A stretch of 63,445 nucleotides of DNA, counting the filler, from Perkinsus chesapeaki ATCC PRA-425 (lineage: Eukaryota > Protista > Perkinsozoa): the NCBI GenBank assembly GCA_013115145.1. It is 5 parts of 5 records of this genome, joined end to end, with 100 filler letters (N's around TTAATTAATTAA, not from the genome) between each part and the next. Parts side by side here need not be neighbours in the genome. Positions count along the whole stretch, not along the records: positions 30,225 to 52,386 come from JAAPAO010000585.1; 4 more parts are not named here. One strand, written 5' to 3'. The notes below the pieces were generated by a model, which did no database searches, was not told the DNA's origin, and worked only from the letters and a program-made list of their open reading frames with translations. Shown here in pieces: positions 30,288-51,927 of the stretch (within the stretch, counting starts at the first letter, position 1; each line of letters starts with the position of its first letter). The position numbers were made by a program, and so were the translations under genes.

Positions 30288-33200
30288 GTGCGTTTTACTG
30301 GCCGAAAAGCGCATTTCAGTGAAGCCATACGAGTTTCAGATTTCAACTTTTTGATTTCGCTGATCAGGTATCTGATCATGTTATTATCACGGTCTATCAT
30401 GCTTATTATTCTCTGGCCCTTCCTTACTCTTATCGGTCCAAGAATCGATTGGCGGTCACTCGTCGTCATCTCATGGGGAGGCCTTCGAGGAGCTGTTGCT
30501 CTCTCTCTCGCAGTAAGCCTGGTCATTCGTGGAGACTGATGAAAGCAGGGACTGTATTATGTCCGACTTCGAATGATGTGTCGTCATCAGACTTGTTGTA
30601 TTCAACCGTAGATTGCTGATGGGGAAAGATAAATGGAACATACTTCCGTCGTGAATCTCACTCGCTTGGAAATTACTATTAGCGGCGACCTGGTTAGCTG
30701 AAGACGACAAACCCGAATAAGTTTACCCTACTATGAGTAAAGCTTTGTGTGAGAATATCTTATATATAATAAACCGATTAACTAAGAGAATATAAAGCCG
30801 GGATTGGGAAAACCCGAAACCCGGGTTTTCGGCGGATAATGATTCATTAATATGTTTTGTCAGGTGATGGTGACTAAATCTCAAGCGGCTTTCCCGAATG
30901 TTCGTCTTCGTGAGGAGCTGATGTTCATCGTGGGTGGATGCGTCTGTTTAACGTTATTAATCAATGCGACAACTGCGCACGCTTTGGTGAGTTCACGGCT
31001 GAATTTCGTGGCGCAGTGACTGTTGCAGGTGAATTTCTTGGGATTTACCAAGTTGACGACTAGTAAGAGAATCCTACTGAAAAACGTCGATTTGAGTATC
31101 GCAGAAGCCGCTCGAGAAATGTAAGAAAAGTGCGTCCGCCGGGGCTCGAACTCGCGATCTCACAAAAGGTACGATGAACTATTAGTGGATGAAGAAGTGC
31201 TTCGGACAAGTTGTCCTAAGGTGAGTGGATCTTGAAATCTTGGTGAATCTTACAATATCTCAACGCAGTCTCTCACGGGAGCGGTGAGTACGTTGCGGAA
31301 CAGAGTGTTGTGTGAGGCGTTGGACGATGAAGAGGAATACAGAAAAAGAGCGTCACCGCGCCGCGAAATTCGGAGAGCATATAGCGACATCAGACTTGGA
31401 CATCGGGTGATTTCACCGGGTAGGCATGAGTGTTATGAAACGGTTGATCGATTTAAGATACGCGAATGATGTCACACACGGACACTCGAGCGCACTTGGA
31501 AGAATTGGCGATCCAAGAGACAGTTGTGTCAATAAGGAAAACCTTGCTTTCTGCGGTTAAAGCGGAGTAAAAATGCCTTCACTGAGGATCGAACTTGTGC
31601 CGGTTTTAGGTACTGGGATTTTATGAATCTTGGGCTTTTACCGAGAAGTTCAACCGCGGCACAGTTACTCATTTATAGCGTTGAAACTGCACAGCAATTT
31701 CATGTAAGAAAGGTCGTGGGTTCGAATCCTAGGGAAGGCGTTTTAATAATTTTAATAATGAGGAATAAAAGTAAGTTTCCTGGTGAATTTCGTTGAACCA
31801 TATATTTTTCATGCTTTTATTTCAGCTGTCGAACCAGGAATTATCCGAATTAGCTCTGAGAGTTTTTGAGAATTTTTGTCGAACATCTCAAAAAAATAAA
31901 ACCTAATGTGCCCGTTTCGTTATTTCTTACGAACTCACTTCGAGAATGATATTACGATGCCATCATTGAGGAGGAGATCGAGCTTGCCAGGATGAATCAG
32001 GGATGATGAAGTCTTGTAAACATCGCAGATCTCCTTGGTGTTTTTACGATGCTTGTCAACCTACATTAAGTTGTGCAGAAAATTTTCGTAATTTTTTCCA
32101 TTTTTCCCGTGGATTTTGCTTGCTTGATTTTTTCATTGAGGCCTAATCTCCTCGATTGTTCAGATTGAAGAGAAAATGAACGACTGGAATAAATTAAAGA
32201 AGAGACTTGAATCAAAGCGAAGAGCATCTTTATGGAGGCTGAAGCAGAAAATGAGGTTGCGCATGCGTGCATACCAACTTTTCCTCAAATTATTGCTTTC
32301 AGGTTGACGACTGACTTCGCGTCCTCTTGGGCAGAGTTAACTGTTTATGTTGTGGATTCATTTGTGGCAGCTCATATAAGAGCTCAAAAGAGTATAGCGA
32401 GGTGGGTGGTAAGGCACAGGTTCGATCCTCGGTGTTGGCATTTTATATGGTTTATTGACCACTGTTTTTCGAACTGCTACGCAGTTTTTTTATAAAGATA
32501 TTTCTCTCAATTTTTTAGAAATGTCCGAAATTTTCGGAAAAGTATGGGTTGGAAATTCGGTTCGAGATTGCAGCAACTTAATTGCTAATAAGCGTATAGC
32601 AAGTTTCTCTCTTTCGCATCCTTTAGGGTGTGATTAGATAGGGCCCGCGACTTTAATATGGAACCACTTGCGGCACGCTCGCGATCAAAATAGCTGTTCT
32701 GTAAAGTATTTCCCAATGAACTACCAACATAATAATTTACATTTTTTATCAAACCGAAGTCAAGTTTGATAATTACTAGTTGACTTCAAAATTACTAATC
32801 GGAAAATGTTATTAAGATTCACTACGATATTGGAAATGGTATGACGTTGAATAGCTGTTTTCCATCAATTGCTTTGAACAATTCCTGGGGACGTTTTTGT
32901 TATATAAAGATGGAGGGCCTCGGGATCGAAGTTCGATCATCGAACTCGTGTTAATGATTTCCATTCAGATATTATGGCCACACAGCATCAGCTGATACCG
33001 CAGAAGAATGGCTCGTTATTGAAGAATCAAAACATGAAGTTCGTGATGCCAAGGAGTATTTATCATGCAGACGAACCTGGTTCGATCCCCACGCCCGTCA
33101 TTTTTTAGATACCTCCATAAGGCTCTTGGGAGTGTTGGTTGGAGAGTGGTTAAATTGGCGCATTCGAAGCAACTTGCGCAGTTTATTTTAATTCATCAGA

Positions 33201-35130
33201 AAACGATTGTTGAGACCATGGAAGGACAAGGAGTGATTTCTGAAGGTCGGCAAAAATTCCAAAAATTTCATTTTTTCTGATCAGTTTCCGTCATACTGAA
33301 TCGTAGCGTATACAAAAATTGAAGTTTTTCCCTTTCGGGAATTATTTTTCCGAGATTTTCGTATCGTATGGAAAATGAAGGAAAATTTCTCCCAACTTGA
33401 GCATCTGGAAATTTATATTTTTTAGGAAAATTTTCCGATATTGATTTTGTAATACAAAATTTGTGTAACACCAGAAAACGGGGAAAATAACTGAGATTTT
33501 TCTTGATTTTTTTTATTTCAGGAGATGCCGAAGGAATCCTGCATAAAATTCAGAGCGATTTGGAAGCACTGACCAGCTTGAGCTTGGAAAGTGTCGACTC
33601 GGGATGCTTGGAAGATTCTCCAACCAAAAAAGATTCCATTGCGAATTCCAGCGAAGGAGGCAGTGCTCTGGCTGAGGAGGTCGGTATATTATGAAATAAT
33701 TTCGTGGCGCGTGAAGATTTCTTTCAGAGCGAAGATGCGTTTGAAGGTTTTCCATCAGCAGATGGGGAGAATGGAGAAGCTGATAATTTCCTTTTGAATG
33801 GTAGGCGTTTTTGTCAAAGTCACGCGCCACGAAATTCAGTTATCAAGTCGGCGCGTATCTGTATGCTGGCCCATGGTGAAGACTTAGTCGATGAACTTGA
33901 GTTTTTGGCGAAAAAGGTGAGAAAAATGTTCTTACCGGGAATCAAACTTGCGTAGTCTTTTCGTATAGGAGGCGTCTTACTTTTCCTAGCAGTTTTCCTT
34001 CTTGCTTTTGCGAGGAAAATTTCATCAACTTTCCAATGGATTTCGTCACTGCGATGTAAAGCAGTAGACAATTCTCCCAGGCGGGTAACACATTTTCCAC
34101 CAAAAAATATACCCTATCGCAATCCTTGGGGCGCCTTTCTATTGCACCGTGATCGTCTGGATGATTTCCCGTGGATCTTTCAGATTCTAGACTCGTCCGC
34201 TCACAACCATTCCTGGAATGTTGGCTCCTCTTCTCCGATTGCATTATCGAGCCGGGCCTCCAGCGGAGCCTCGAGTCCAGTGGACTTAAATCAGCCACTT
34301 CTTGGGGAAATTCCACAGTAAGTTTTTTTTCGGGAAATTTCCGGGAATTTTTTTCAGTGCGGTATCGATGGAATCGATGCCAGGAACGGCAATAAGGACG
34401 ATCGCGCGACGAGTTAGTACGCGAATGCAAGCACATCGACAACTCATGCGAGCGGTAAGTGGTTTGATGGGAGTAAAATTTCTCAGAAAATTGGAAAAAT
34501 TCTCGGGAAATTTATGATCTGTCTAACAAGCAGAATTTCTCTGAAAATTTTTTTCCAGCAGACTACAGGAAAAAATATTTTTTCAAAAGTGTTATTTTTT
34601 TCAGGCATCGGGTTTGTCGCCGGCAATGTTAAGTCCGAGAACATTGCCAAGTCAGATGAATACAAAAAAGGTTAACATTGTTATGCCTAAGTCTGACATA
34701 TAATTTCGTGGCGCGTGAAATACTTTTGACTCCCATTTTAACAAGCGATTTATTTCTCTTGAGCGTTGCGTTATTTGAAAATTTCCGTAATTTTTCCGTA
34801 ATTTTTCCGTAATTTTTCCGTAATTTTTCCGTAATTTTTCCGTATTTTTTCCGTATTTTTTCCGCATTTTTTCCGTATTTTTTCCGTATTTTTTCTGTAA
34901 TTTTCCCGTAGTTTTTCCGTAGTTTTTCCATAATATTTCCATAATTTTTCCGTAATTTTTCCGTTAGTTTTCTTATCAATGAGGACATTATCAACCTCGA
35001 CAGCACCCTCCTACACCGAGCGTTCGCATGACCGTGAGCTGCCCCCCATGAAACTCTACCATTCGGCTACAGCTCCGTTGGCCTTTATGGCACCATGGCT
35101 TATAAGCGATGATAAACCTAAAATGGTAAG
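30288..35130 (+). CDS. SOS1/NHX7-like Na+/H+ antiporter (CPA1), 5'-truncated by the contig edge; many exons; 3' end approximate
   Basis: VVISWGGLRGAVALSLA, ELMFIVGGCVCLTLLINATT, EMYDELLVDEE, EYWDFMNLG, VDSFVAAHIRAQKSIARYYG and EESKHEVRDAKEYL..VVKLAHSKQLAQFIL match the SOS1-type membrane and cytosolic domains. Confidence 0.85.
34779..34972. repeat. 11-bp tandem repeat (TAATTTTTCCG)n, about 17 degenerate copies, intronic
   Basis: Direct inspection of 34779-34972. Confidence 0.95.
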
Positions 35131-35499
35131 AAATAAATTTACACGAAAAATTATTGATAATTTTTCGGAAAATCTGTCTGGATTTTTTTAAATGCAAGTT
35201 GGGATACTTATGAAGTTTATGTAAGTCTTTTTTGGCATCCTGATGCTGGATAGATTTTCTGAGGAAATTTCATAGATTTTTTTGCGGGAGAATTCAAGAA
35301 AATTTCTAATTTTTTCAGTCTTTCCCTTCACCTTGTGAGCCTCACGAGAGCACATGCGTTGATTCGGTGAGAAGGCTTTCGATTCTTTCCAGTTTGAACA
35401 CGGCGAATCAAGAAGGAGCTCAATTGAGCGACGAGGTGGGAGGAAATCTACACAGTGCGCACGTATCTTTGGGCTGAGAATCTTTAGGTTAACCCTGAT

Positions 35500-36997
35500 T
35501 TGCAGGCAAAAGGACCGAGAACTGTGAAGCCAAAATCGGTTGGATTATTCCAGAAGATATTCAATCGAATTTTGGGGCGCAGTGACGGAACACCAAAAAG
35601 GAAGCATGATGAAACCGAGAAGATTGAAGAGGTTAAAAGATTCGCAGGCAAGAATTTTTTAAAAATTTTCCTTATTTCCATACGCCCGAAAACTTTCTAC
35701 TATTTCTGATTCTCGAGTCTTCCCGCACGTACGCTCTACAAGCGGGACTTTCTAGTGTCCAATTTTTCCCCAATTTTTCCCCAGTTTTCCAATATTATTC
35801 CCCAATTTCCCCAAATTTTTCCGATCTCTTTAGGCACTCCAGCTCCAAAGAGACGTCGCCTATCGAGTGAAGCGCCGACAACAGCAGCGACTACTAGGGC
35901 ACCCGAAGGGAGGGATGAGGACGAGGAGAGCGTTGAGGAAATGCAAGATGAGCAAGACTTACTACATGGAGAGACCGAAGGCAGTGAAAGTGTTGAAGAT
36001 GATCGCGATTCCGTAAAAGCGCCGGCAGAAGAAAGCGTTGAGGAAACGCAAGATGAGCAAGATTTGGTTTCTTCACAAGTTGAACAGAGCGAGCACTCCG
36101 GCAGTGATGAGAGTGTCGAGCACGATCATGAATCTGTAAGTCAAGAGGATTCAGAAGATCACCAGGAAGAGGATAGCGTTGAGGAAATGCAAGATGGGCA
36201 AGATGAGCAAGATATGCCTGTCTCGGAGATGGAAGAAAGCGAGCTTCTTAACGAAGGGAGTGTTGCCGATATGCAGGATGAACAAGGTTCCTGCGATGAG
36301 GAGAGTCACTCAGAGGGACAGGAGTCGGATGGAAGCGTTGGGAAAATGCAAGAATCGCAAGATGAGCAAGATTTGCCTGCAACACAGCGAAGTAGCGAAG
36401 ATGAGCAAGAGAGCAGTCATGTCGCTGAGGAGGGAAACTCTGAGGAAAGCGGTGCGGAATCGCAGAATGTTGGTAGCGATGTCGGCATGGAAAACGTTGA
36501 GGAAACTCAAGAATCGCAAGATGAGCAAGATTCCGTTAGCCAGGAGCCCGAAGAGGAGGAACACATCAGGGGAGAGAATCATTCCGTTGTAGCTGGCATA
36601 GTTCGAGGTGAGTTGGGTGAACTTGAGATCTTAAGGTATCTTGCAATTTCCTAACGCTAGCAGAAATTTTGTAAAGCTAATTTTCCTGCTGGTAGGTGTG
36701 GTTGTAACATCCGAGGAGCAAGCGAGTGATGCCGAATCGTCATCATCAATCCCTTCTTCACCTCGATACGACTTCTCGAGCGATGAGGAAACCAGCAAAG
36801 TTATAGTTCACGACGACGATATTTCTGATTCGGAAAGAGCAGTTCTTGAAAAGCACGCCGATGCGATTGTAGCGGCTTTCAGCGATGAGGCAATGCATGG
36901 TGAGTCTAGAAGTGAAATCGATCGGATGGGCGAGCGCTTTTTACATAGAGCCTGCTGCACAGAGCAAGACGAAGAAGATGGGGAGAAGAGCCGCTGA
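35500..36997 (+). CDS. Highly acidic repeat protein with NLS-like PAPKRRRLS and about 7 QDEQD repeats (multi-exon)
   Basis: ORF 35755-36654 is D/E/S/Q-rich with repeated (SVEE)MQDEQD; flanking exons at 35500 and 36695-36997. Confidence 0.65.
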
Positions 36998-37129
36998 GTT
37001 GAAGGCATTACAGGCATCTGGCACGAAGCCAGGCATATTATATGTAGGATATCTTAGGTTGACGCGTGCAAGATGCATAATAGGCTGTCATGATTACGGT
37101 TTAGTTCCATAATGTTCCACATGAGCCTG

Positions 37130-37874
37130 ATTCTGCTCCTCATGAATGTCAATTCTGGATGAATCAGCCTTTGCAAATCCAGTTGGAGGCGTGGGCTAAA
37201 AAGTAAGTGTAATTCCTGGACAGCAATGCCATCGTAACGCTGGAACCTAGTATAACACTTATTATCGAAAGTGAGCTTTATCCAGCTGGTTTGGGTTACA
37301 TCCAAATTGTCATTCAGCACTGCTCCCGGAATTGCTAGGATAATAAAAAATATTTCACGGAGACTTTGTGAGTCTGGGAATCTTAGAACCAGTCTGAGAA
37401 ATGCTACCAACATGGGCGTCCTCGTGCCACTCGAGGATGCCATGGAAATAAGATTTTGGATGGTTGGTGACGTCTTGCGAGTTTGATAATGAATGGTGCT
37501 GTCAGGTGGTATCCAGATCTCGATGAGAATCTACCATTCACGACGAGCGTTGAGGATCCTTCTCCGTCTGGGAAGGACTCACCTCCAAGTTTACTCTACA
37601 TTGATGCGATGAAGACACCAAACGAAGTACGTCGGAGCGTTAGATGGAATTTCAGTTGTTGTTGGTGTTTTCAGATTGCGTCTTTCGGTCTGCAGGAGCC
37701 AGCCGTTATTCACATTACATTCGAACATTAGTAGATAACCATAAGTTCATTGAGTGTAGATATTATAAACAGTTTCCTCGCTTTAATTTGCTTTTGTTCA
37801 TGGAATTTGCGAAGAGGCGAATCATTCGAGTTTGCGAATGTCATGCAAGGATGCGGGTTTACCAAACGATCTAG
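37130..37874 (+). CDS. Hypothetical multi-exon protein
   Basis: Exon-like open segments joined by GT-AG introns (e.g. KTPNE | CVFRSAG...RVYQTI*); no family recognised. Confidence 0.3.
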
Positions 37875-38099
37875 ATTCGCTCACATATGACACAAACACT
37901 CGTTTGAATGAGCTAACCTGCTCTTGATATTGTCAAGCATGAATACAGTAGCAGCAGACTCGGAGACTTTGTAAAACATACATATGTACGTGTGGAAGTT
38001 GGCAGGGGGAAGGAATAGTATTAATAACTAATACTACCCCTTCCTCCAGCAAATAATTAGTTCATTACCTGCGAAGGTTTCTATATATCCTCGAATTTC

Positions 38100-39799
38100 A
38101 TGGCGCATTGTTTTCTCAACTCGAAAGATGATTTCGTATCTGATGCGATCGACGGGCTAGTCGCCACCTCTGGAAACTCACTGGCTCGTCTTATAACCCC
38201 AGAAAAAGATACTAAGGTAAGCTTGAACCATGCATGATACAAAATAGGTCGACGATAACTCCCGTTTAGGTTGTTATCCGTGCAGATTGGTCGAAGGATC
38301 ATGTTGCCGTAATCTCTGGTGGTGGTAGTGGCCACGAACCTACCCATCCTGGCTTCGTCGGCCGAGGCATGCTCACCGCAGCCGTTTGCGGATCAGTCTT
38401 CGCTTCACCAAGCGTGTCTGCTATCCTATCAACAATCGTTCAAGTGACCGGTGATGCCGGCTGTCTTCTTGTTGTTAAGAACTACACCGGTGATAGGCTC
38501 AACTTCGGCCTTGCCCGGGAAATCGCCAAGTCAAAGTACGGCCTTGAAGTCGAGATGGTCATAGTTTCCGATGATATCGCTATCCCTCAATCAGCCCAGC
38601 CTCGTGGTATCGCGGGCACTCTCTTCGTTCACAAGATCGCCGGAGCGGCTGCCGAGTCGGGTGCTGATCTCGCTGAGGTCTCCCGAGTGGCACAAGAGGT
38701 TGCCAGTAGGGTGATGTCGATCGGTGTAGCTTTAACTCACTGCAACATGCCCGGTGAAGCAGTTAAAGTTAATCGAGTTAAACCGGGTATGATGGAGGTT
38801 GGCCTAGGTATCCATGGCGAGCCGGGCGCGTCCACGGTCCCTGTAGAGAGCGCCGCTGGGACAGTCAACGTACTAGTTGAGAAGCTACGACGAGCTGCTG
38901 ACCGTAGGCGTCTGTCAATCAAGAGAACAGCCTTGTTGGTTAACAACTTGGGCACCTGTATGCCAGCTGAGATGAACATCATTGCGAAAGATGCCCTCGA
39001 TGAACTTGAGCCGGACCTGCTTGTTGGTCCAGCATCGCTCATGACATCCCTCGACATGCATGGCTTCTCACTAACACTCTTGCCGCTTACAGACGAGATA
39101 GAGCAGCTTCTGACCGCCCCAACTGTGGTGCCATCTTGGCCATCTGCGAAAGCTCCGTCTGTTGGCCGAACAATTCGCGTGGACAAGCACATTTCCACCG
39201 AACTGACAAACTCCACTCCGAGCTCCAACCCACTGTATCGTGCCCGAGTTGAGGCCGCCTGTGATGCTGTCCTCTCCTCAGAGGGAGAGCTCAACGACTT
39301 GGACAGTGCTGTAGGTGACGGTGATTGCGGTACCACCTTGGCTGCCGGCGCCAGGGCAGTGCTATCTGGTATCGATGAGGCCCCCCTCGCCGATGGCCAT
39401 GACCTCGCCTTGTGGCTTGCTGAGGCCTCCAGCCGTATGGGAGGCTCCTCGGGCGTTTTGGCGGCTATTTTCTTCACAGCTGTCGCTAAAGTCGGTGATT
39501 GGTCCCCTGCTGCGGTGAAGGCAGGTGTTGATGCCATGACCCTATACGGCGGTGCTTCACTAGGCTCTAGAACTGCTATGGACGCCCTCATCCCATACGC
39601 CAAAGCTCTCAGTGCTGGAGACGGTCTCGTGGGTGCTGCTGGGGAGGCCATGAAGGGGGCCGAAAGCACGGCTACGATGAGCGTTGCCACACATGGTAGA
39701 TCTGCAAATGTGCCCGGTGATGCGCTAAGAGGTCGTACCGATCCTGGTGCTCTTGCTGTTGGACGGGTGGTTGAAGCGATTGCTAAGGCTCAGGGTTAA
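38100..39799 (+). CDS. DAK: Dihydroxyacetone kinase, fused DhaK-DhaL (exons 38100-38216 and 38270-39799)
   Basis: VAVISGGGSGHEP, KNYTGDRLNFGLA, GIHGEPG, GDGDCGTT and GGSSG; a single 53-nt GT-AG intron keeps the frame. Confidence 0.97.
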
Positions 39800-40376
39800 A
39801 TCGTCTTGTAAAGAGATTTTATCATTTTGTTAAGCCTTTGTGTTCCACTGTGACGATTGGAAAAGTGTTGATAACCACACGAACGCAAGAGGCTTTTATT
39901 GGGAGCCTCGAAGGCCGTCGATGATCTGTCTCAAACCACACGTCGTCCGTCGATGTAATGATCATTAGTCTAGCCTGTATGGCTAGAGTTATAAGCGAAG
40001 AGTGATACCAAAAACAGCCCTTGAAATTAATTCAAACCGTGGAATCATTGGGGATAATTTATTCCTAAGAACAAGTAATCGATTGTCGTTGTTCGATATA
40101 CAGTGGAAGCTCGTATGGCAGAAAACTAGATATTATCAATCATCTGACGAGCTGATCGTCTTTCCCTTTAACAAATTATACAAGAGTAGGGGTAAGGCGG
40201 GTGAAGAGAGATGACAATCAGAGCGAGGCTAACTCACCGACACCAACTTTCACAGTTGTGAATCAAAGCTGGTGATACCATCTGGTGATTCATAGTGTGG
40301 AGCAAGTCGTAAGTCTAATGAGGCGCGTAGACAAGGCGCAAGTAGGGAGGTACTGTGAGTAGTTAATATAATGATT

Positions 40377-40475
40377 ATACACCGCGCGTCAAATTCTTAT
40401 CAGCTCGTGTTTTTCAAGGGTTTAAGAACAACTAAGGTGTACTCATCAACGATTACCTCAAGGATATGTTCCCTA
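40377..40475 (-). repeat. 99-bp dispersed repeat, copy 2
   Basis: Reverse complement matches 16470-16568 with three transitions. Confidence 0.9.
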
Positions 40476-41353
40476 CTAGGGAAGAACAACCCACAGGCGT
40501 AGCCTGTAGCTCTCTCGAGTCGAGACTCATGAGACTCAATCGATGCGTATGTTGCCTTGAGTGGTAATGAACACTGCTCATTGAGCAGTAACAGATGGCT
40601 ATGCTATTTCCGACTGATGGTAAGTCAGCCATCGTATAACGACCAATTCTGAAAGATCGACTGTTCCTCGAGGAGGCTGCCATGAGATTTGGAAATGGGG
40701 TGAAAAAGATAACAGAGTTGGGAAGTTCGGGGATTGATGGGCTTGGTTTAGAATCTAAACTGTAGATAGACAGCGTGGCAGTAATGCCCTTGCGTGACTG
40801 TCTCACACCGTGCGGCCAGAAGTTCCTAAATTCCAATTGTTTCACTGATGTTCCGAAATTGAAATTCCTGATTAACCACCTCCCCGTCCAAGATGTGAGT
40901 ATATCGGCACACCCAGGCGCTGAGCGCTAGTTGAAGGGAGCGTAAGGGCGTAAGAGTGAGCATGATCGCTGCCACGGTGGGACTGAGCTTTCTTTTTCAA
41001 GAAGTTCGGGAGACACTGCATCCGTGATGCATGCCGAAGGTCGATGCTCACTAGGCTCCCAGTTTTGCGTATCAACATGATACTGTCGGGTTATCACTTA
41101 CTCAAGACTTCAACAGCAATGCGTTCTGTTCGGAGCCGTGAACCAACGATAGTCACAAGCGTACAGCGAATGTTGCACTGAGCGAAGGGCACGGGAATCA
41201 ACAAATGATAAGCCAATGTTGTCAGACTGCGAAAACCCCCATCCTACGATTCGTGAGCAATGAATGTGAATCATAGCATATTGCTAATAGTCACTATTAA
41301 ATAGTGTTGTTGGGTAGCCAGGGAAGCTCATGCGTATTCTGTCGCAGAAGGGC

Positions 41354-41572
41354 TCACAGAAGTTCTGTGAGGACCACAGTTTGGTCCCATCCGATGAGTC
41401 CGTCCCTATCTGAGTCAGATAATCTGACTACAAGAACGGTATACAACACTGAGGGTGAAGTCCCTGTAGTATGCCATTTGTGAGTTCGATGGATGACACG
41501 TACTATGGCAGCGCTCAGGACAGAACGCGTGACGGCTGCGTCGGTCCAAACCCGGAAGTGACTACTAGTCAC
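41354..41572 (-). pseudogene. Possible retrotransposon RNase H remnant
   Basis: HFRVWTDAA resembles the first catalytic strand of retroelement RNase H (hxhxTDAS); surrounding frames contain stops. Confidence 0.3.
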
Positions 41573-42903
41573 TGACTAGAGTACCATCTGGAGCACTTCA
41601 ATTGAGCCCGGTATAGTAATCACTGTATTTCATCGGTTAGTAGCCACTTCTTATCACATAATATTTTTATCCACAATACAGTTTACTGCGTATTGTGAGG
41701 TAATAATCTTCAAGACATCTACTCTTAACAGCTAAGGATGTTCAAACCACAAGCTGCAGCCCAACTAGAACTACAAGTACAAGTAAATGGAGGGAAGAGG
41801 GAGCAGCACACAAATATCTTTAGGTCGCCGTTCACGGCAAGGGGAGCGGAAGTCCAGCGTCCACTACGAGCTCTAGTTTCGAACTTGGAGCTTCACACGA
41901 GAGTGCAATGTCACTGCTGAGGGCCTCAGCCTGCGGCTTTCACGCTCGAGCCATGCACGGTGAAATCGAGGCGATGTCATCAAGTCGGTGGCAACGTCAC
42001 GAGGGATCCAAAACCAAAGGGTTTGCCTTGAGCGGTTGAGGTTGGTAGCCTTAGGACCTAAGGCTTAGGTTACCAAAGTTAGCAGTACCATGAGCATGAA
42101 AATAGATGCAGTACGGACATTGATATCCGTAACGGGGAGGTTAACTTCCCAAGTCAACGCAGGATTTGTCCAGCAGAGAGCGGACAGCTAACCCTCAACA
42201 CGGTGTTGACAACATCTGTAGTAGGTGTACTAGCGGGCCGCTAGTAGCGGTAAACCCTATTGAATTGACGTGAGGAGGTAACTCACATGCTGCACGTGAT
42301 TAACCGTGAATCATTCACGTGAAGTGAAGTTCACATGGAGCTGTTCTATTGGAGCACTGTACGTATCATTAAGACGCTTCGCCCAGATGAAACAGGGGCC
42401 CCTTCGGCATCCAGCACTCTCCCCTATGTAGCAAGAAAACTAGATCATGTTTTTAGCATTTGAGTTGAGCCGATCGCGAACCTCGCTCTTTGTCATCAAG
42501 TGAGATCACTGTCATCGCTCAAATACAGGGCTCCTGTAACGGGGGCGAGGTACCCCAGGAGCCGTTGAAACTAGCGTTCCGAAGGAACCCAACACAATAA
42601 GTCTAGTTGAAAGTTTTCGAATGTTCTCCTTAAATGGCATATACTAAAGACAGCACCATGTTCAACCCGTTGACGTTACATGCTGGTTAACTGTCAATCT
42701 CACCGCAAGGGTCTAATCTGTAATCTTGGCACATCACATTGTGATGATCACAAAGAAGAATTCTTAACAACATACACAAAGACCAGCATGAGTAGTCATT
42801 AGGAGTTAACGGCATACTGCTGCCAGGGCATACTATAATAGATTAGGAAGCTTGAGGAATATCTCCTCAGCATATTGAATAGCTGGTTTGAGCTTCTGTC
42901 AGA

Positions 42904-43365
42904 TTATAAGCAGCCTAGTTGCTGACACAATCCTCTGGCCACGTCATCGTCAAGTTGTGGTACAACTCGATATTCCTCCTCGCTCAGGCTCATGTCGATC
43001 GCTGCGTCTCTCTGGGCCATGTAGAAGTCAATATAGGTGAAGCCATCCGACCTTATTTCTTGGAAAATTCGATGATATCTAACAGCATGAACATAAGCAT
43101 CAAGGGCTGCTAAATCCCAATCGAGAACAAAGGTGGAGGTCCCATCGTGTTCATGGAGCACGCCGGGGACTTTGACTGTGCGAAATGATGGCCTAAGGCC
43201 GGGCAAGTTGAACAGGCATGAGTAGTTGGCAACTTCCGGACAGAGAATCGTCAGCTTGAATGGGTCGTCACCCTGTTGAATACCAAATATTCTCGTACCG
43301 GATGCATATAACACATTGAGTGGCAGCAGTATGAGGAAGTATAGAGCGATAGTGGGTGAGGTCAT
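42904..43365 (-). CDS. Small secreted protein (153 aa, intronless)
   Basis: Signal peptide MTSPTIALYFLILLPLNVLYA; clean ORF with paired Cys. Confidence 0.75.
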   Translation of the reverse strand: MTSPTIALYFLILLPLNVLYASGTRIFGIQQGDDPFKLTILCPEVANYSCLFNLPGLRPSFRTVKVPGVLHEHDGTSTFVLDWDLAALDAYVHAVRYHRIFQEIRSDGFTYIDFYMAQRDAAIDMSLSEEEYRVVPQLDDDVARGLCQQLGCL

Positions 43366-44945
43366 TTGTCCTATAGCTGAGTGAGATGAGTATGAACATC
43401 AAGTAGAGATGACGCAAAGCGACAGCCACCAAGTACAACGTGCTGATCTTATGGCCCACCAGTGACGGGCCTCATCATCTCCGATTTACATGAGCCGCTT
43501 CATCGTGACACAACAAATTGCCTCCATAACTGCGCGCCTGCATAAGAGTTGTCTATTTTCAGAAGTGTGAATACATACAGATCAGCGTAGCAGAAATAAA
43601 GGGAACTCGTCAGAGTGCTACCAAGGAAGCCTGTCAGTTAGGCACGGGGCTTGAGTTCGGCACAACTGTTCTGGATCGAGTCAATAATACGGGAATGTAT
43701 TTGCGGTGTTAAGCTCCCGAGAGCCTGTGAGACCATGTTATCGGATAACACTGTTCTCACTGAATGTGAATGACGGAAGGCAGAAGCTGGGAGACTCTCA
43801 GTAAGAGTATTACCTCGATGCGTACTACGCAAGCGCTTAATTCCGAAAGAATCCTTCGGAAGGAGACAAGATAGGTGCGGGCGCGGGAGCACCACACTAA
43901 ATGTGGCGCATGTAGGGATTCCCCTCAAGCCGACGTTTTTGATAGCATACATTGGGCCGCCCAAGTTGGGCGGACAGAGAATCGTTTCGGTTTTGGGCAG
44001 CGCGAAAAGGGCGCTTATGGGCGTGGCACGGAATGAACGCCATGCAGGCATACCGGTCAGTCTTTGAGTTGCACGCGTGCGCATTCATCTTTCTTCTGCG
44101 CCTCCTTTTTGTCGCTTCGGCGCAAGTTGGGCTGCCAGTCAGCCGCTGCCCAATTTGAACGTAAATTGCGTTCTAATCACTGGCAGGTATGGGTGCTGTG
44201 GGGTATGGGTTTTGGGGGACAGTAATTGACCCTTAGCGGTGTAGGTCCGCTCCCACCTTGCCCCCCCCCACTGTCAAGTACCCAGCTACGCCACTGATGT
44301 CATACTGTGTTGGCCGGCTGTCGCTAGAGATATCGAAAGCGCTGTTGTTACTGTATTCGCATTGAAGGGTTTATGTGTTTATAAGGATTGCGTTCGTCTA
44401 GTATGACTTAATACATCATTTACCTTCTTTCACAGCGGCAGCTTCAGGTAGGCTAAGTGTGCTGAGGGCCTTTTATAACCGACGATGACTCTCGAGACTA
44501 TCCGTCGTATGCAAAACAACAACATGCTAAACGCGAGAGATCCTGCGCGGGTATTTCGAACATCTCCGTGTTAAAATTCAAATCCACACCGGGAGGGCCC
44601 AGCAGCAGCGGCTGACCCGCTGTGACTCGTCCCGGTAGGAGTATTCGACTGTCAGATTCCACCAGGTCATCCTACCGAAACCATTCGTGAATAGGTATCA
44701 TCCTTGGACTTCCTTGAACACCCAACCGGGATGGATCGTCTCCGCCCATAATTCCACATTGATGTTTTTCAATGACCACCGTTTGACTGGCCGTGAGTGT
44801 TGCCGAATTAATACTTGTGAACGTTCGGCATGGTATGACCGAAACGCAACAGAATAATAATAAGCGACAGTAACGGTTGCTAATGTTACAATACATTCAC
44901 AGCCGCCGACGGCCTGCGAGGGGAATGAACAAAACCGTCAATGCG

Positions 44946-46544
44946 TTATGTCCTACCTTGGTAGAAACGCCTCTGTTGTTGATGTGTTTCCTGTTGCTGT
45001 TGTTGTTGTTGTTGCTGGGCGGGCAGGAGGGGTGATGTTAGTGTACCATTACTTGACACATCGAGGCTCGACTGAACATGGAGGGATTGATACGGAATCC
45101 GTGAAACGAATAACTCACTCGATGGGATAGGGGAGGACTTCGTCTGTTGGCTGGCCAAAACACAAATAGGATGAGCAGTGACGGTATCCATTCGGTCACA
45201 AAATAGACCTAGGAAGTATCTTAGCTAGATGCATGCTCTAAGGCTGCCGGAGTGTTACTATGGAATCCCACGCCTGTCTGTCAATACCAGGAGGGCCGAC
45301 AGTCTTCACCAGCCCGACACCGAAGAGGACCTCACTCATTCCTCGCACTAGAAATATGAGAGGGCATGTCAATGTCAATACCAGCACCTGAGTAACACGT
45401 CCAATGCTGATAGAGAGGATAAGCAAGATACTCGATTAATCACAGACTTGTTCCGGGATTGGCCAATTTGCCGAGCATTTCCCGACAGTTGTCGGCGAGA
45501 TCTATCACGCAATTGACCGGACACTTGCAACTGAAAGGGGAAATGGCAAACAAAAGGCAATAGAGAAGATGGCTTACACCATAGTAGAAGAACAGGATCG
45601 AACAGATTATGTAAAGAAGGCCCACGACAAAGTAAATGTATCTGAAGAGTCGCTGATGAGCAGGAAGACGACTCTAGGGCCTACTGGTTGTATTCTTTCC
45701 ATGCAGAGAGCAAGAAGGTTACAATCGATATTATTATAAAAACGCCATATCTGACATTGATGATCGAGGATGTGATTAAATATGGCTTATTACACTGCAA
45801 TATTGACAAATATGCAAATTGGCCGCAAAAGTGGATGTGACACCAACACCGCTGCATAGTAAACCTACCACAGAAATGAAGTCGCTCACGTAAAGGTGAT
45901 GATCACCTGTGCCCAGAATAGAATAACTATGCTGTATGTGGAGAGGAAAAGCAACGATGGGAAAATCATGAAGACATCATTTGTCCAGCTCTGAGATGGA
46001 AATACTATCTGGCAGCTCGTCAGCAGGTCATACCTGCACCGGATGCTCCAATCGGTGCATTCTGACTTCAAAATGAATGACTGCATCAAAAACAAGTGAG
46101 AGGGCCCGTGCGGCATTGGAGATGCAGAGAGCCAGTAGAAAGAAGAACCTAGTACGCCCTCCAGTGAGGGATATCGGAGGTATCTGAAAATACCCGATGC
46201 AGGATTCGAACCTACGACCATCTGCTCCGTAGGCAGACATTCTATCCAGCTGAACTAATCGGGCGATGTAGGCCTAATCCTATGTTCAACACTAAGACGA
46301 GTGTGAAGCCAGTGAAGGCTTCTTGGAACCCCGCGATGCTGACACTCACCGCATCAGCTCTCTTCTCCTCTTGTCTTTGTTTTATTAATTGCCTCGCTAA
46401 TACGATTGCCACAGCCAAGAATAAACCACAATCGACATAGGCCAGCACCGCTGCATAAGCTGAGTTGTGCGCGAACACCTCATCAATCGTGAACAGGTCC
46501 TCCTCGAAATCCTTAACAACACTGAGCGTCGATGCTGATGACAT
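44946..46544 (-). CDS. TOM1/THH1 (DUF1084/GPR137-like) multipass membrane protein (multi-exon)
   Basis: FFFLLALCISNAARALSL and FPSLLFLSTYSIVILFWAQV resemble the TOM1 motif LPGLLFFSTYTLLVLFWAE; several TM exons and a polyQ tail. Confidence 0.75.
46191..46264 (-). tRNA. trnR-ACG: tRNA-Arg(ACG), intact, inside an intron of the TOM1-like gene
   Basis: Full cloverleaf GCCCGAT/ATCGGGT, D-arm GTTC/GAAT, anticodon stem TCTGC/GCAGA with CT-ACG-GA, T-arm GTAGG-TTCGAAT-CCTGC, discriminator A, then TTTT. Confidence 0.97.
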
Positions 46545-46910
46545 CACAAACACTGAACGACAAATACGTAAAAATTGCCTCAAACAATAATGATAGTGAC
46601 ACGCCACTTTCTTAAAGTGTTATATAAAATTACAGGATAAATTGATTAACTACAACGGTGTTCTCGCTGTTGATGATGCCTTGTAGCTGCTCAAAGGCGG
46701 TAAGGTGATGACCCTATCCCCACTGGTACACAATTCTGATAATAATAATAAAGAAACAACTTTTTTCAATGATGCAGCAGGAATGATGTATACTATAACG
46801 TCAGAAGCAAGTTTACAAAAAAATCGACAACCGTATTAGTAGTAACAACTGTCTCCCTCATTCGATACGAGGCGACGGGCGAAGGTTCGATCCCCAGCGA
46901 GAGTAGTTTT

Positions 46911-49900
46911 CTAGTAATTATCAAGTATCCAGTTTGTGGCATCCTCGAGCGTTGGGTGATGCATCAAGGCTTCTTGTATTTGATCTTGCTCGAAACCAAT
47001 TTCCCGAAGTTCAGCTGAATAAAATGCGAGGTGCCGGGATCGAACCCGCGACCCCCCTTACCAGCTGTCTTCTTGATCTCTGCTTTCTGCTCCTCTATTC
47101 GTTCCCTCTCTTCGCTATTAGCTCCTGCGAACAGTATGTTCAGGACCTCCTCGTTGTCATCATCCATGGTAGTTGCTCGACTCTGACCAGCCATCTCGCC
47201 TAGCTCCGCATCCAAGCTCGCAACCTGCGCCATTAAATTCCAAAACTCTCCCACCCACCCTCATGCCTACCGCGTCTCGATTTGACTCGACAACAACAGG
47301 AGGGGGAGGTGGCGGAGGAGGAGGAGGCGGCGGCAGCGGAGGACTTCGAGTCGGCGGCGCAGGAGTCGGTGACGTCCCAGGCGGAGAACGGGTCAGAACG
47401 GGCTCGCTCTTCTCTTCGGGCAACGCCTACACCATTAGTAACGATGCACGCGAAGACCCAAGCAGTTACATTAGCGGAGGTTCGATCCCCGGAGGAGACA
47501 CTTTTAATGGGCATTTCTCCAGTTAGCAAGTCGGTCGGCTGGCCAGCGAAGGGGTTCGTGCTTCGGCTCATCTCGACGGGAGGGGGAGGTGGAGAACTAT
47601 GAGGAGGCTCTGCCCGCCTCGGGACAGCTTCTTGCCAAGCAGCGTTGCCGAATGAAGCATCCTAAAAAATCAAAATCCCGATTGCGAGGATCGAACCGGC
47701 GCCTACTCCAGACGGATGTCGGCCACCACCGCCCTTCTTCCTCCGACTTCCCGATCGAGGCCGCCATGGATCGCTGTTGAAGTTATCTGGGTTTGGCCAC
47801 TCGACCGGTTGAGGCGGCGGAGGTGGCGGGGGCTGCTGCTGTGAGTATGCCCCTCCGCCATTTCGATGATATTCGCCGGTATTTCCGCGCTGCAGGGATT
47901 GCCTACAACCATTCCAGCGTAATCGAAAGGTCCTCGGTTCGATCCCTGGCTACAGTTTTTTCTGCAAAGCATCGTTTTGTCCCATTAGTGCCGCCGCTGA
48001 GGGCGTTGGACTTCCCGCATTGTAATGAGCCCCACCAGAGGGCATTCCCGTAAATACATTCGGCGGGCATCCGTAACCCTTCCCGAAATTCCCCTGGCGA
48101 TTCGGATAAACAGGGCCCGGTGGAGGTCCTCCTCCTCCTGCTGCTGCTGGCATGATTCGTTGATTTATGTAACCAGGTGGCGGATAGACTGGCATGAACC
48201 CCTGTGGAGGTGGAGGAGGAGGAGGTCCTCCCGGTTGCATCATCATAGGGGAGTTCGGATATGCCGCAAATCTGACAAAACAACTATGATAAACGAGGAG
48301 CTTCACGACTATCATCAAACATAAGCAAATGATGAATTAGATATTATAATCCAACCACCACCGGTAGCAGCAGCACTATTGCCTTACACATTATGCCGCA
48401 TGTCCTGCTGCTGCTGTTGTGGAGGGCCACCACCGCCGCCGTACATCTGCTGTTGCCCAACTTGCTGCTGTGCTATCATCTGGCTCTTCTTTTTCAACTC
48501 TCTCAACGCCTTCGCAACATCAACGAAGACAGGACGTCTACTCTCTCTCGGGTCGATCTAAAAATACCCTAGCCGGGATTCGAACCCACGCCTCCTACGC
48601 AACGCAGTGCCAGGTCAGCAAGGTCCGATGCTACACCAGGATTCCACCCGCAGCTCCATTGTATCTGATCCAGCAGTTATCATCCTTCAACCAAATACCA
48701 ACAGTAAAGATTCACTTATTCCAAATTGGAATTTCGTTTATCAGTTTGACTTGTGGATCACACAAACCCTGACAACGATAGACTTTTCACTCGCCACAAA
48801 ATTATCAAGAACATTCATGAATATAAAAAGAGTACATGACATGGCCGCGAGTGCCCGCTAGTGTGCACACCTCGGTTCGCGAGGACGGAAGAGTGCGAGT
48901 TCAAAATAAGTGTTTGAAACTTCTAATACAACTCATTCTAAAAAGATAGTGGTATGTATCATTAATTTCAACCATGTATAACATGGTTCATAATTGAGGA
49001 GATCTTAGTAAACTACTACAGGGCATCGATCAACATAGTCCATTGTCGAATCTCTTTAACGCCCATTTCGTCCGCCTTACCATATTCCACAATTTCTCTT
49101 TATTGATCCCCTTGTACATCTCCGTGATGGCTTTCGTTCGTGGGTCCTGCAGCGCTGGTGGCTTGGTGGTGAGGAGCTCCAATAGGACCATACCGAAGGA
49201 GTATCTAAAAGTATATTGGATTTGGTTGAAGACAGAAATCACTTACACTTCAGATTTCTCAGTAACTACGGAGGTAGAAATATACAAAGGATCGGCGTAA
49301 CCTGAAACACCAGCCACATCCTGACATATCATAAATCTTGCACGCTTCAAGCTTAGATATTCCTGCTCAACGTTCAGATATTCCCAATCATCCCTAAATT
49401 CGGGAATTAAGAAGCTCTTCGCTGGCGAGTAACAAAATCGACCAAAACCTTGCTTCTTCATTTCCCCCTTTCCCTGTTCGAAAGTTTCTAATACCAAAAC
49501 ACTCAGAACAAGGAGATCTGATGCGCCTAGTCCTTCTAGTCAGCATTGCCATGATGATCGGCCTTCGCCTGTTGTTGAGCCCCGGACTATTCCCACTGAC
49601 CCTCCTCTCAAATGATTACGTGTATTCGACTTTGCCCTCCCTTCCCGCATCACCTATTGTCCCCGAACACATGTCCACTTTCTGGCCATCTCCCCCTTTT
49701 GCTGTCGCCAACAAGGCTAACCCAAAATCAGCAACCTTCGCATTGCCGCTTTTATCGAGAATTATGTTTTGAGACTAAAATGGTAAACATGTGACATTAT
49801 TTCGGCGGAGCGATGTATTATTACTTTTATATCTCTATGGAACACTTTAGGGGTAGAGTTATGTAAATGGCTCAAACCCAGACAAGCATCCAGTGCAACT

Positions 49901-51927
49901 GACACCCTCAGCGTCCATGGGAAGGTCTTCGCACTATTTGGAGCTGATAAACGAGAACCTGAAATCGAGCAGAGCACTATAAGTGGGGTCGAAGAAGATG
50001 GTGCCAGAATTTCCCTCCCTTTCAGTTCACTTGTATCACTCTATCATGGATGTCCACGCCTGTGATGTTTCAACAACTCACGGAAGAGGAAACGAAACAA
50101 TTCTGCCTTCCCATTCCGGAATATTCCATAGGAATGTCCCCCTACGGAGAGTCCTTATTGAACCTTCAAGAAACTTTCCCGCGCACTCCCATCGACTACT
50201 ACGCAAAAGATGCCTGTGTGGGCGAGCTTTGGAGGCTTACGTTGGAGCCGAAACGGGAGCACGCAAGTCCTAGCAACCCGGATCCGATTATTAACAGTAT
50301 TAATATGATATTAACTACAATCTATGAGATATTATTAAAGACATCAGGCCGATTATTAATATAAGAGGCATGATACCCTATGTATACTTTCCCGGCTTCC
50401 CATCAGTGCTACCATCAGACAGAGCCACAACTTTAATTCCAACGACCCAGGTTCGATCCCCGGCTAAGCCTTTATTACATAAATCTCCCCCCTCCAACAG
50501 CTCATAAATCAGTAACCTTTCACTCCCATTTCTCGCAAAGCCCATCAGGATAACCAAATTCGGATGCCGAAACTTAGACAGCACCTCAACTTCCTCCCGG
50601 AATCCCGACTCTTTGGGAGCCCTCAAAACCTGCCATAAATCCGCCACGATCACCGTCGAACGCATAGACTACTTTTATGGCCACTTCGGTTTGATCTTTG
50701 AGTTGACATTTATAAACACTTCCGTACGACCCTTGACCAAGCCTGTACCTATCAGACGCTTATTCCAACTTTTTAACTTCCTTCAACTTTTTCGCCCAAC
50801 ATTCCTCAACTACATAATAAGAAAATATTTCGTTTAACTGAACGAGCCCTTGGCAGAGTGATCTAGGATTTACTTTACATCATCATCAGAGACAGTGAGA
50901 TCAAGAAGAACTGAGTTTCATCGATCCAGGCCGAAAGGCTTCCGATGTCGCTCATTTCATATCAGCGACCCCAACTGGACAACGTTTGTCCTTTCCGAGG
51001 TCACCGATCTACTTAAAGTGTTCATTTACCCCAAAGGAACGTGCTTGCCTATAAAAAGATATAATAATATTAAAACCATTCCTATCCTTGAATGAAGCCT
51101 TCCTACAGCTTCCAAGGTGAATACACTAGATAGCAATCCGATCGGCAACAACGTCCCCCGGGGGAATTCTCTTATATGTACTCGAGCAACACACTGGGAG
51201 TCATCTCGTCCCTTAGTGCTCCTCGAAAGGAGTTGATATATGAGATATTTCTACACCAAAACATCCAGCGCATTCCCAACATCTGCTGTCCCGTCTGTTC
51301 GACCATCCAAGACGAGCTCATAGAGCTTTAGAGAGATGAAGTATTAGAAGGTTTCCCCTGTATTTAGTTTCCGAATATGCCTTCAAAATACCACATTTCT
51401 CCGGCTCCACACAGCCTTAACACGATCACATACGAATCACGCGGCCACGCTCTCCAGCTGCAGGCGAGATCGTGATGAGACTTGTGGAAGCTAAGTTCCC
51501 TATCAAGAGTCCTGTTCTACTTTTTTGGTATTCTTATTAACCTATTTCTGATCATATTAATTCCTAACTAGAACAACCTAATCCTTACTAATATCGATCA
51601 ATCTATCGACTCCCCAATATCCTAATAATTAGTGGAGTGCTTTAACAATCGATAATAAAACACTTTTATGAATATCTCCATACAACCACTCATGAGAGAT
51701 TAGCTAGCTCAGTATTAGTTCATAACCTTCCCGAACCTTCCCAGATTGGTCTCGTCATAATCCCGGCCATACTACTTTGATGAGAAGTTCTCCGTAGCAG
51801 CAGCGAGTTCTGGATATGGATACTCCAGTGCAATCCTATTAAGATTGAGATCAGTTGGCATAGGTTGTCTTCTGGATGCTGGTGCCAAACCAAATCCGTT
51901 ACCACGACTGCCACTACCGTGTGCCAT
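46911..51927 (-). CDS. RLK/Pelle (IRAK-like) protein kinase with a P/Q-rich tail and C-terminal UBA domain (multi-exon)
   Basis: YPYPELAAATENFSS, LGQGSYGSVYK..VAIK, FREEVEVLSKFRHPNLV, HRDIKSQNII, KVADFG, GTIGYADPLY, SEVYSFGMVLLELLT and LALRCIDPRESRRP. C-terminus ELREIGFEQDQIQEALMHHPTLEDATNWILDNY* is UBA-like. Confidence 0.92.

Follow-up and report, generated by a model that had tools for sequence, protein, structure and literature searches.

tRNA 3′-half modules in Perkinsus introns

Introns of two genes of Perkinsus chesapeaki ATCC PRA-425 (assembly GCA_013115145.1) carry short modules that have the layout of a tRNA 3′ half followed by an RNA polymerase III (Pol III) terminator. The window, that is, the whole stretch of DNA analysed, is 63,445 nt long, and the modules lie in its part from contig JAAPAO010000585.1 (22,162 bp, entire; window coordinate = contig coordinate + 30224). 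The two genes are a 745-aa gene that an earlier note on this DNA called an antiporter (here antiporter-like) and a 725-aa protein kinase gene. The derivation of the modules from the 3′ ends of tRNA genes is well supported. With moderate confidence we read them as eroded intronic tRNA genes whose B-box has been kept by selection, probably as DNA sites of the TFIIIC type.

The 10-mer GTTCGANYCY matched the contig 14 times, against 0.77 matches expected from shuffles and 0.92 from shuffles of the contig alone. The excess claimed in the earlier note (13 seen versus about 0.7) was borne out, at 14 matches versus about 0.8-0.9 expected. The syntenic loci of P. marinus and P. olseni had a further 8 and 16 matches, respectively. 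Twelve of the 14 matches belong to tRNA 3′-half modules, with both orientations represented; 11 of these are in introns and one is directly 3′ of a stop codon. The other two are given in Table 1, and the one at 45594-45603 is regarded as a chance match because it is exonic and has no T-run.

A module consists of the variable loop (mostly AGGTC or AGGC), a T-stem strand, the loop TTCGAWY, the other T-stem strand, the 3′ strand of the acceptor stem, the discriminator and a T-run. The acceptor part is seven bases ending in GGC, the discriminator is mostly A, and T4-6 follows. Among the exact modules of the three species, the T-run begins exactly 11 nt past the 10-mer in 26 of 34. The consensus is AGGTC-sCAGG-TTCGAWY-CCCGG-nnnGGGC-A-TTTTT, with a frequent A51.C63 mismatch. 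The 5′ ends fall between the anticodon loop and the variable loop (positions 30-44). The T-stem pairs 49:65, 50:64 and 51:63 are formed in 50%, 71% and 32% of the 34 modules, and the pairs 52:62 and 53:61, both parts of the B-box, are kept. The modules have neither the complete cloverleaf nor the paired T-stem of a functional tRNA gene.

A profile search (nhmmer) added a few degenerate modules, such as 33921-33952, and the modules found by it in the window are confined to 31125-33952 and 46186-50477. Relative to the host gene, 6 modules of the window are sense and 7 antisense. ARAGORN and Rfam called only 46191-46264 as a tRNA and none of the modules. A-box patterns were not enriched. For this reason, and because ARAGORN made no call, split tRNAs with hidden 5′ halves were rejected. 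The earlier note held that the acceptor strands all differ and that the modules are not copies of one element. This is only partly right, because a consensus exists and module subfamilies are common to different genes; given both, a small number of source sequences, or copying among introns, is possible.

Module introns and their splice signals

Module introns were called from a three-species alignment and frame continuity because RNA coverage is confined to the THH1 gene (Table 1). In the kinase gene, removal of 13 introns gave a single open reading frame (ORF) that contains the whole kinase domain, a stretch rich in proline and the UBA exon. To keep the ORF, one 5′ splice site was shifted 2 nt. 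The public P. olseni protein P0127, mapped on the syntenic locus, has introns at every orthologous module position.

Most introns proposed in the earlier note stood. Those at 31121-31168, 31567-31609 and 33056-33108 in the antiporter-like gene and at 47015-47061, 47662-47706, 47903-47953 and 48558-48598 in the kinase gene restore the frame and join conserved protein. The intron given as 32402-32967 is real but ends at 32968. For 31704-31825, the 3′ end found no support, and the next conserved exon sets the intron at 31704-32160. The interval 50431-50478 is merely the 5′ 48 nt of a 520-nt intron, and the short version hits a stop codon. Two modules, 47474-47506 and 46874-46911, were outside the intron list of that note.

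Short introns are filled by the module; where a module intron of the window is long (four cases), its module is at the 5′ end. The tRNA region 37-48 itself provides the 5′ splice site (GTAGGC, GTAAGG) of several sense introns. Where the module is antisense, its A-run makes a 5′ splice site of the GTAAAAA- or GTAAGAAAAG-type or serves as Lys codons of the upstream exon. The idea that the terminator supplies the pyrimidine tract holds for the short sense introns but not for the sense modules at the 5′ end of the 457- and 567-nt introns.

Table 1. Features of contig JAAPAO010000585.1 in window coordinates (for introns, the strand is that of the module or tRNA; L003 is the syntenic P. olseni locus)
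Position	Strand	Feature	Remarks
30368-37731	+	745-aa antiporter-like gene	Annotated
31004-31015, 33700-33711, 33823-33834 (-), 34704-34715		Copies of motif GAATTTCGTGGCGCGTGA(A/C)	Region 34626-34727
31121-31168	-	48-nt intron filled by antisense module 31125-31163; 5′ splice site GTAAGAAAAG includes the antisense T-run	nhmmer E 9e-6; in-frame EM/YDEL; P. olseni orthologue has a module at the same site
31567-31609	-	43-nt intron filled by antisense module 31568-31604; 5′ splice site GTAAAAATGCC	Junction AE/YWDF conserved; orthologous module at L003 3773
31704-32160	+	457-nt intron; sense module 31708-31745 directly after 5′ splice site GTAAGAAAGGTC	Next conserved exon begins at 32161, phase 0; degenerate P. 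olseni module GGATCGAATCC at the same site
32402-32968	+	567-nt intron; sense module 32410-32445 at 5′ end	Orthologue at L003 4310 retains the B-box despite ~190-530 nt to the 3′ splice site
33056-33108	+	53-nt intron filled by sense module 33067-33106; T6 then AG	Junction AKE/YLH in frame; orthologue at L003 4620 without T-run, B-box retained
33917-34183	-	267-nt intron; degenerate antisense module 33921-33952 (GGGAATCAAAC) at 5′ end	nhmmer E 0.005; orthologue at L003 5314 lies in a 52-nt intron, B-box exact
38369-39796		ORF of dihydroxyacetone kinase (DAK) gene	100% identical to Perkinsus chesapeaki dihydroxyacetone kinase
		153-aa gene	Annotated
44897-46544	-	THH1/TOM1-3 gene	Annotated
45594-45603		GTTCGANYCY match	Exon confirmed by RNA contigs; no T-run
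46185-46350	-	THH1 intron with intact sense tRNA-Arg(ACG) 46191-46264	TTTT, then directly CAG (3′ splice site)
46202-46211		GTTCGANYCY match	Inside the intact tRNA-Arg(ACG)
46874-46911	+	Antisense module in kinase 3′ untranslated region (UTR)	T-run 46907-46910 adjoins stop codon 46911-46913; arrangement kept in all three species
from 46911	-	725-aa protein kinase gene, UBA domain C-terminal	Annotated
47015-47061	-	Last kinase intron, 47 nt, filled by sense module 47020-47056	Precedes the UBA-domain exon; orthologous intron annotated in P. olseni
47427-47499	+	~73-nt kinase intron; antisense module 47474-47506 at 5′ end	Discriminator and T-run overlap the upstream exon; B-box lost in the other two species; exact 5′ splice site (GTCTCC vs GTGTCT) inferred from the reading frame
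47662-47706	-	45-nt kinase intron filled by sense module	5′ splice site GTAGGC is the tRNA variable-loop region
47903-47953	+	51-nt kinase intron; antisense module 47925-47961	Module reaches into the anticodon-stem region; T-run exonic, encodes Lys-Lys
48558-48598	-	41-nt kinase intron, sense module GTAGGAGGC-GTGGG-TTCGAAT-CCCGG-CTAGGGT-A-TTTTT-AG	Junction LALRC/IDPRESRRP
49959-50478	+	520-nt kinase intron (intron h); antisense module 50441-50477 at 5′ end	Sole splice yielding GGDL-CSRLSAPNSAK, as in orthologues; orthologous introns 46 and 71 nt

Probable origin from intronic tRNA genes

The tRNA-Arg(ACG) at 46191-46264, called by both ARAGORN and Rfam (61.8 bits), is intact within an intron of THH1. 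Two RNA contigs stop at 46184 and resume at 46351, which places the 3′ splice site directly after the terminator of the tRNA-Arg. The 5′ boundary of this join lies 1 nt upstream of the GT expected from the alignment, which may be a strain difference or a contig artefact. In P. olseni, the same tRNA-Arg is intact in the orthologous THH1 intron. The orthologous intron of P. marinus is ~85 nt long and holds a degenerate tRNA, starting directly after GTGAGTAT, that has no 5′ acceptor strand and a diverged anticodon arm. This 5′-truncated pseudo-tRNA directly bridges intact intronic tRNA genes and modules. The sequence of module 47925-47961 recurs in a P. chesapeaki DNA contig from another genomic site, where it is preceded by a tRNA-Asp-like 5′ part. 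Together with the tRNA-Arg intron series, this contig supports the tRNA origin proposed in the earlier note.

The opposite orientation occurs in P. olseni. Its locus L006 has an intact initiator-like tRNA-Met at 19953-20025, antisense in an intron of the AICARFT/IMPCHase gene, and the A-run in the GTGAAAAAAA 5′ splice site of this intron is the T7 terminator of the tRNA. Words of the tRNA-Arg(ACG) (46190-46258) had a depth of 5,000-6,500x, compared with 107x in the single-copy flanks, corresponding to ~50-60 identical genome copies. Longer tRNA pseudogenes that ARAGORN did not call were seen at 20743-20820 of the syntenic P. marinus locus (L002) and at 465-540 of L003. One is near full length and the other, with a long variable arm, is truncated at the anticodon loop; they are further intermediates between gene and module.

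For P. marinus, over 500 copies spread over five types of tRNA gene have been reported, together with Dada transposons that target tRNA genes (PMC3706591); modules of the present kind are not described there. Dada transposons were rejected as the source of the modules, since they insert in the D-arm region and do not explain modules that start at positions 30-44.

Conservation of the B-box among three species

Modules were found at orthologous positions and in the same orientation in 11/11 sets from P. chesapeaki, P. olseni and P. marinus. The relics are old, being common to the three species. Some losses were seen: the B-box of set c is gone from two species, and P. chesapeaki lacks set f. 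For plain introns of the antiporter-like and kinase genes, no alignment of P. chesapeaki with P. olseni or P. marinus was possible. The idea that modules were re-inserted independently in each species was rejected, as the orthologues share orientation and subfamily flanks.

Between orthologous modules of P. chesapeaki and P. olseni, the positions specified by the B-box (52-58, 61 and 62) were 90% identical (89/99). Identity was 41% (9/22) at loop positions 59-60, 48% (53/110) at positions 63-72, 49% (43/88) at positions 36-43, 65% (36/55) in the variable loop and 68% (30/44) in the T-run. B-box and unspecified module positions differed with a Fisher p of 6e-14. The B-box is equally intact in antisense modules and at a distance of at least ~190 nt from the 3′ splice site. 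The outer T-stem pairs are often absent, frequently through an A51.C63 mismatch; therefore, the T-arm of the RNA is not the retained feature. Since the retained bases are the TFIIIC B-box and the constraint is blind to host orientation and to RNA pairing, TFIIIC binding would be the most economical explanation. Of the options in the earlier note, that of retained TFIIIC sites, or extra TFIIIC (ETC) sites, fits the conservation best (B-box only, either orientation, long introns, no A-box), the binding itself being a prediction.

Conservation might instead act on the RNA, which we consider improbable. The T-arm-like hairpin or the TTCGA core would serve as branch site or splicing enhancer of very short introns, or a small RNA resembling a tRNA half would come from the excised intron or from an independent Pol III transcript. 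A58 lies ~21-25 nt from the 3′ splice site in the 41-47-nt sense introns, a plausible branch distance, and there is moderate conservation (65-68%) of the variable loop and the T-run, both of which also act as splice signals. However, half of the modules are antisense to the host, T-stem complementarity is not kept, and the B-box is as intact at least 190 nt from the 3′ splice site. One conserved module is in a 3′ UTR, and the eight RNA-confirmed plain introns have no comparable motif. The B-box as branch point in particular was rejected, because its conservation extends to antisense copies and to long introns.

There is also little to recommend an absence of function, in which ectopic gene conversion with the many tRNA genes, or local mutational bias, would keep the B-box tRNA-like. 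tRNA genes are indeed highly multicopy, as the depth of the tRNA-Arg words indicates, and several modules include stretches of ~24 nt that match other genomic contigs at 95% identity or more. Conversion would, however, also homogenise positions 59-60, the T-stem and the acceptor strand, all of which drift, and 10-25 nt of homology is very short for it. Moreover, orthologous modules keep subfamily-specific flanks, which argues for descent and not for overwriting.

A possible route from tRNA gene to module

We propose that the modules would have arisen by erosion in place. The starting point would be intact tRNA genes, which do occur in Perkinsus introns with the Pol III terminator set against a splice junction. 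For a sense tRNA, the T-run is followed by a CAG 3′ splice site, and for an antisense tRNA the run is read as the A-run of a GTGAAAAAAA 5′ splice site. Deletions would then strip 5′ sequence from the tRNA and return the intron to the usual 41-53 nt, a step displayed by one intron and inferred for the rest. What would remain is the variable loop, T-arm, 3′ acceptor strand, discriminator and T-run. The variable-loop region (GT-AGGC/AGGTC) is the 5′ splice site in several introns, and the T-run is the pyrimidine tract in short sense introns. G52-A58, C61 and C62 have stayed nearly constant, while the acceptor strand, the outer T-stem pairs and loop positions 59-60 have drifted near saturation. 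The constraint would lie on the DNA, and a B-box with a nearby T-run may still bind TFIIIC as a promoter-less, ETC-like site.

RNA contigs confirmed 8 plain GT-AG introns of 42-50 nt in THH1, 0/8 with a module, and 41-53 nt is therefore the usual intron size here. Introns of 39-1622 bp, most of them below 100 bp, were reported in a survey of Perkinsus (PMC3101222).

Several points weigh against erosion followed by selection on the B-box. A single decay series was observed directly, and TFIIIC occupancy of the modules is purely a prediction. The conserved spacing between B-box and T-run and the frequent adjacency to the 5′ splice site are not needed by a simple TFIIIC-site model, and the clustering of modules in particular genes is not explained by it. 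A dozen sites per 4 kb of one gene is far above the known density of ETC sites. The common consensus with its A51.C63 mismatch, together with subfamilies that cross genes, could mean that a few master elements spread. In addition, the RNA contigs of P. chesapeaki, from small sets, reached THH1 only and neither the antiporter-like nor the kinase gene.

A broader reading, which we offer as speculation, is that 3′ halves of Pol III genes (tRNAs, possibly U6) were made into minimal spliceosomal introns. The variable loop would be the 5′ splice site and the terminator the pyrimidine tract, and the B-boxes would form a dense intragenic array of TFIIIC-type sites marking particular genes. If true, it would amount to a route, so far undescribed, by which Pol III transcripts renew or add introns, as well as to a new use of TFIIIC sites within Pol II genes.

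Did the modules create introns?

The main rival to erosion in place is introner-like spread, which we consider rather unlikely. A 5′-truncated copy of a Pol III transcript (tRNA 3′ half plus U/T-run) would insert into coding sequence or beside splice sites and, by supplying both a ready 5′ splice site (GT-AGGTC) and a pyrimidine tract, create or replace introns. It might do so by reverse transcription that the U-tail primes at A/T runs or by reverse splicing inside one and the same transcript. The modules are always 3′-complete with the T-run and variably truncated at the 5′ end, as in retroposition. In both orientations, the T- or A-run stands at the junction with the exon or splice site, and in some cases Lys codons of the exon share it. 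Subfamilies that include the 5′ splice site region recur in different introns and genes; one of them, GGTGGTrAGGCrCAGG...ATGTTGC, is found both in antiporter introns and in kinase intron d.

The distribution also agrees with such spread, in that modules cluster in few genes. Apart from the window, the P. marinus aminotransferase gene has modules at L002 3884 and 4344, both filling their introns, and modules also occur in the P. olseni kinase homeologue and its 802-aa neighbour (L010). No modules were found in 44 kb of other Perkinsus loci with ~14 genes (L006, L011), in a 92-kb dinoflagellate genomic locus or in a 21.6-kb metagenomic alveolate-like contig. When kinase paralogues were used to look for further Perkinsus loci, the matches were mostly transcripts of dinoflagellates. 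A second motif, resembling the U6 3′ end plus a T-run, is in the same genes.

Exact intron positions were compared among P0127, its P. olseni paralogue P0140 (L006) and one dinoflagellate homologue. For module intron h, the paralogue has an intron 9 nt away and the dinoflagellate one within ~4 nt, with an ambiguous boundary; for module intron g, the paralogue intron is 4 nt away. Plain introns show a like mixture of exact and slightly shifted matches, so the module introns are not visibly younger than the plain ones. Because introns nearly coincide with them in the paralogue and the dinoflagellate, the modules may have colonised existing introns. Between P0127 and P0140, 5/7 kinase-domain introns lie 4-12 nt apart, which looks like intron sliding or turnover.

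Turnover of this kind would suit introner-like spread, but the near-coincidence of h and g with paralogue introns, and of h with that of the dinoflagellate, resembles the behaviour of plain introns. Recent or near-identical full-length copies were not seen, genomic contigs matching T-arm-length stretches only, and target-site duplications were not evident. The tRNA-Arg series is a truncation in situ, and spread alone leaves the B-box-specific conservation unexplained. Of the earlier note's option that tRNA fragments seed introns, the tRNA 3′ origin was upheld, and intron creation by the modules is hypothetical. In P. chesapeaki, kinase intron h has an insertion of ~440 nt (49959-50430), the beginning of which partly duplicates the start of the exon downstream.

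Comparison with known systems

The modules resemble ETC or TFIIIC-only sites of yeasts, C. elegans and mammals in having an isolated B-box GGTTCGANNCC without an A-box or a functional tRNA. This B-box is exact in 12 window modules and in 34 across the three species, with no associated Pol III gene. Like ETC sites, the modules are conserved between related species (B-box 90% vs 41-49% background, with the p value given above), lie within Pol II gene territory and are independent of orientation. Unlike ETC sites, they are visibly derived from tRNA 3′ halves, with the terminator at tRNA spacing, and they lie inside spliceosomal introns, often filling them, at ~3 per kb in some genes; TFIIIC occupancy is in their case only predicted.

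With the introners, or intron-generating transposable elements, of Micromonas, Aureococcus and dinoflagellates and with the introner-like elements of fungi, they share a recurring family that forms whole introns of unrelated genes, several copies per gene. Module plus splice sites make up entire 41-53-nt introns in the antiporter-like, kinase and P. marinus aminotransferase genes. Unlike introners, the modules have a source in Pol III gene 3′ ends and show no near-identical recent copies, terminal repeats or target-site duplications. Their copies are ancient, common to three species and diverged, and the differences between species resemble losses (sets c and f).

Short interspersed nuclear elements (SINEs) derived from tRNAs, and tRNA pseudogene fragments, are likewise tRNA-derived, multicopy, dispersed, 5′-truncated and 3′-complete. 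SINEs, however, have a 5′ tRNA head with A and B boxes and an A-rich tail or one related to long interspersed nuclear elements (LINEs), whereas the modules are a 3′ half ending at the Pol III terminator. They have no A-box and end at a T-run beside a splice site or exon. Intronic tRNA genes are known from nematodes, mammals and others, and the intact tRNA-Arg and tRNA-Met within Perkinsus introns are of this kind. In contrast to those of other organisms, the Perkinsus terminator adjoins the splice site, and a decay series leads to an intron-sized relic.

A full-text literature search on Perkinsus introns, tRNA, B-box, TFIIIC, SINEs and introners turned up no account, for Perkinsus, of introns derived from tRNAs or of B-boxes within introns. 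The finding is apparently undescribed so far, in line with the earlier note, which knew of no description. If confirmed genome-wide, it would provide a natural series from an intact intronic tRNA gene to an intron-sized relic. The series would show Pol III gene ends supplying splice signals, which bears on intron renewal and gain. Conserved promoter-less B-boxes in an alveolate would make TFIIIC-only sites testable beyond yeasts and animals, and P. marinus is culturable and transfectable. In annotating Perkinsus genomes, for which there is little RNA support, the modules serve as intron markers.

Gene content of the contig and other intronic motifs

Five genes are annotated on JAAPAO010000585.1 (Table 1), and their order is the same in P. 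marinus (L002) and P. olseni (L003).

The second motif carried by introns is GAATTTCGTGGCGCGTGA(A/C). The window holds 3 exact copies of it, and it occurs in orthologous introns of P. olseni. In other Perkinsus loci, it is restricted to those with modules, and some copies are followed by a T-run and CAG. One copy is the 3′ end of a U6 small nuclear RNA-like stretch, the 5′ half of which overlaps a coding exon. The link to U6 is weak: the Rfam U6 score was 23 bits (E 0.066), below threshold, and P. olseni had no match. This family may be a second set of Pol III 3′-end relics in introns.

A tandem array of an 11-nt unit (CCGTAATTTTT) lies within an intron of the antiporter-like gene (34790-34970). 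In the kinase gene, a plain intron at ~49330-49362 has a conserved 8-bp hairpin (GTATCTTA...TAAGATAC), which is perfect in P. olseni (L003 15833-15892) and P. marinus (L002 ~16640-16673) and less so in P. chesapeaki.

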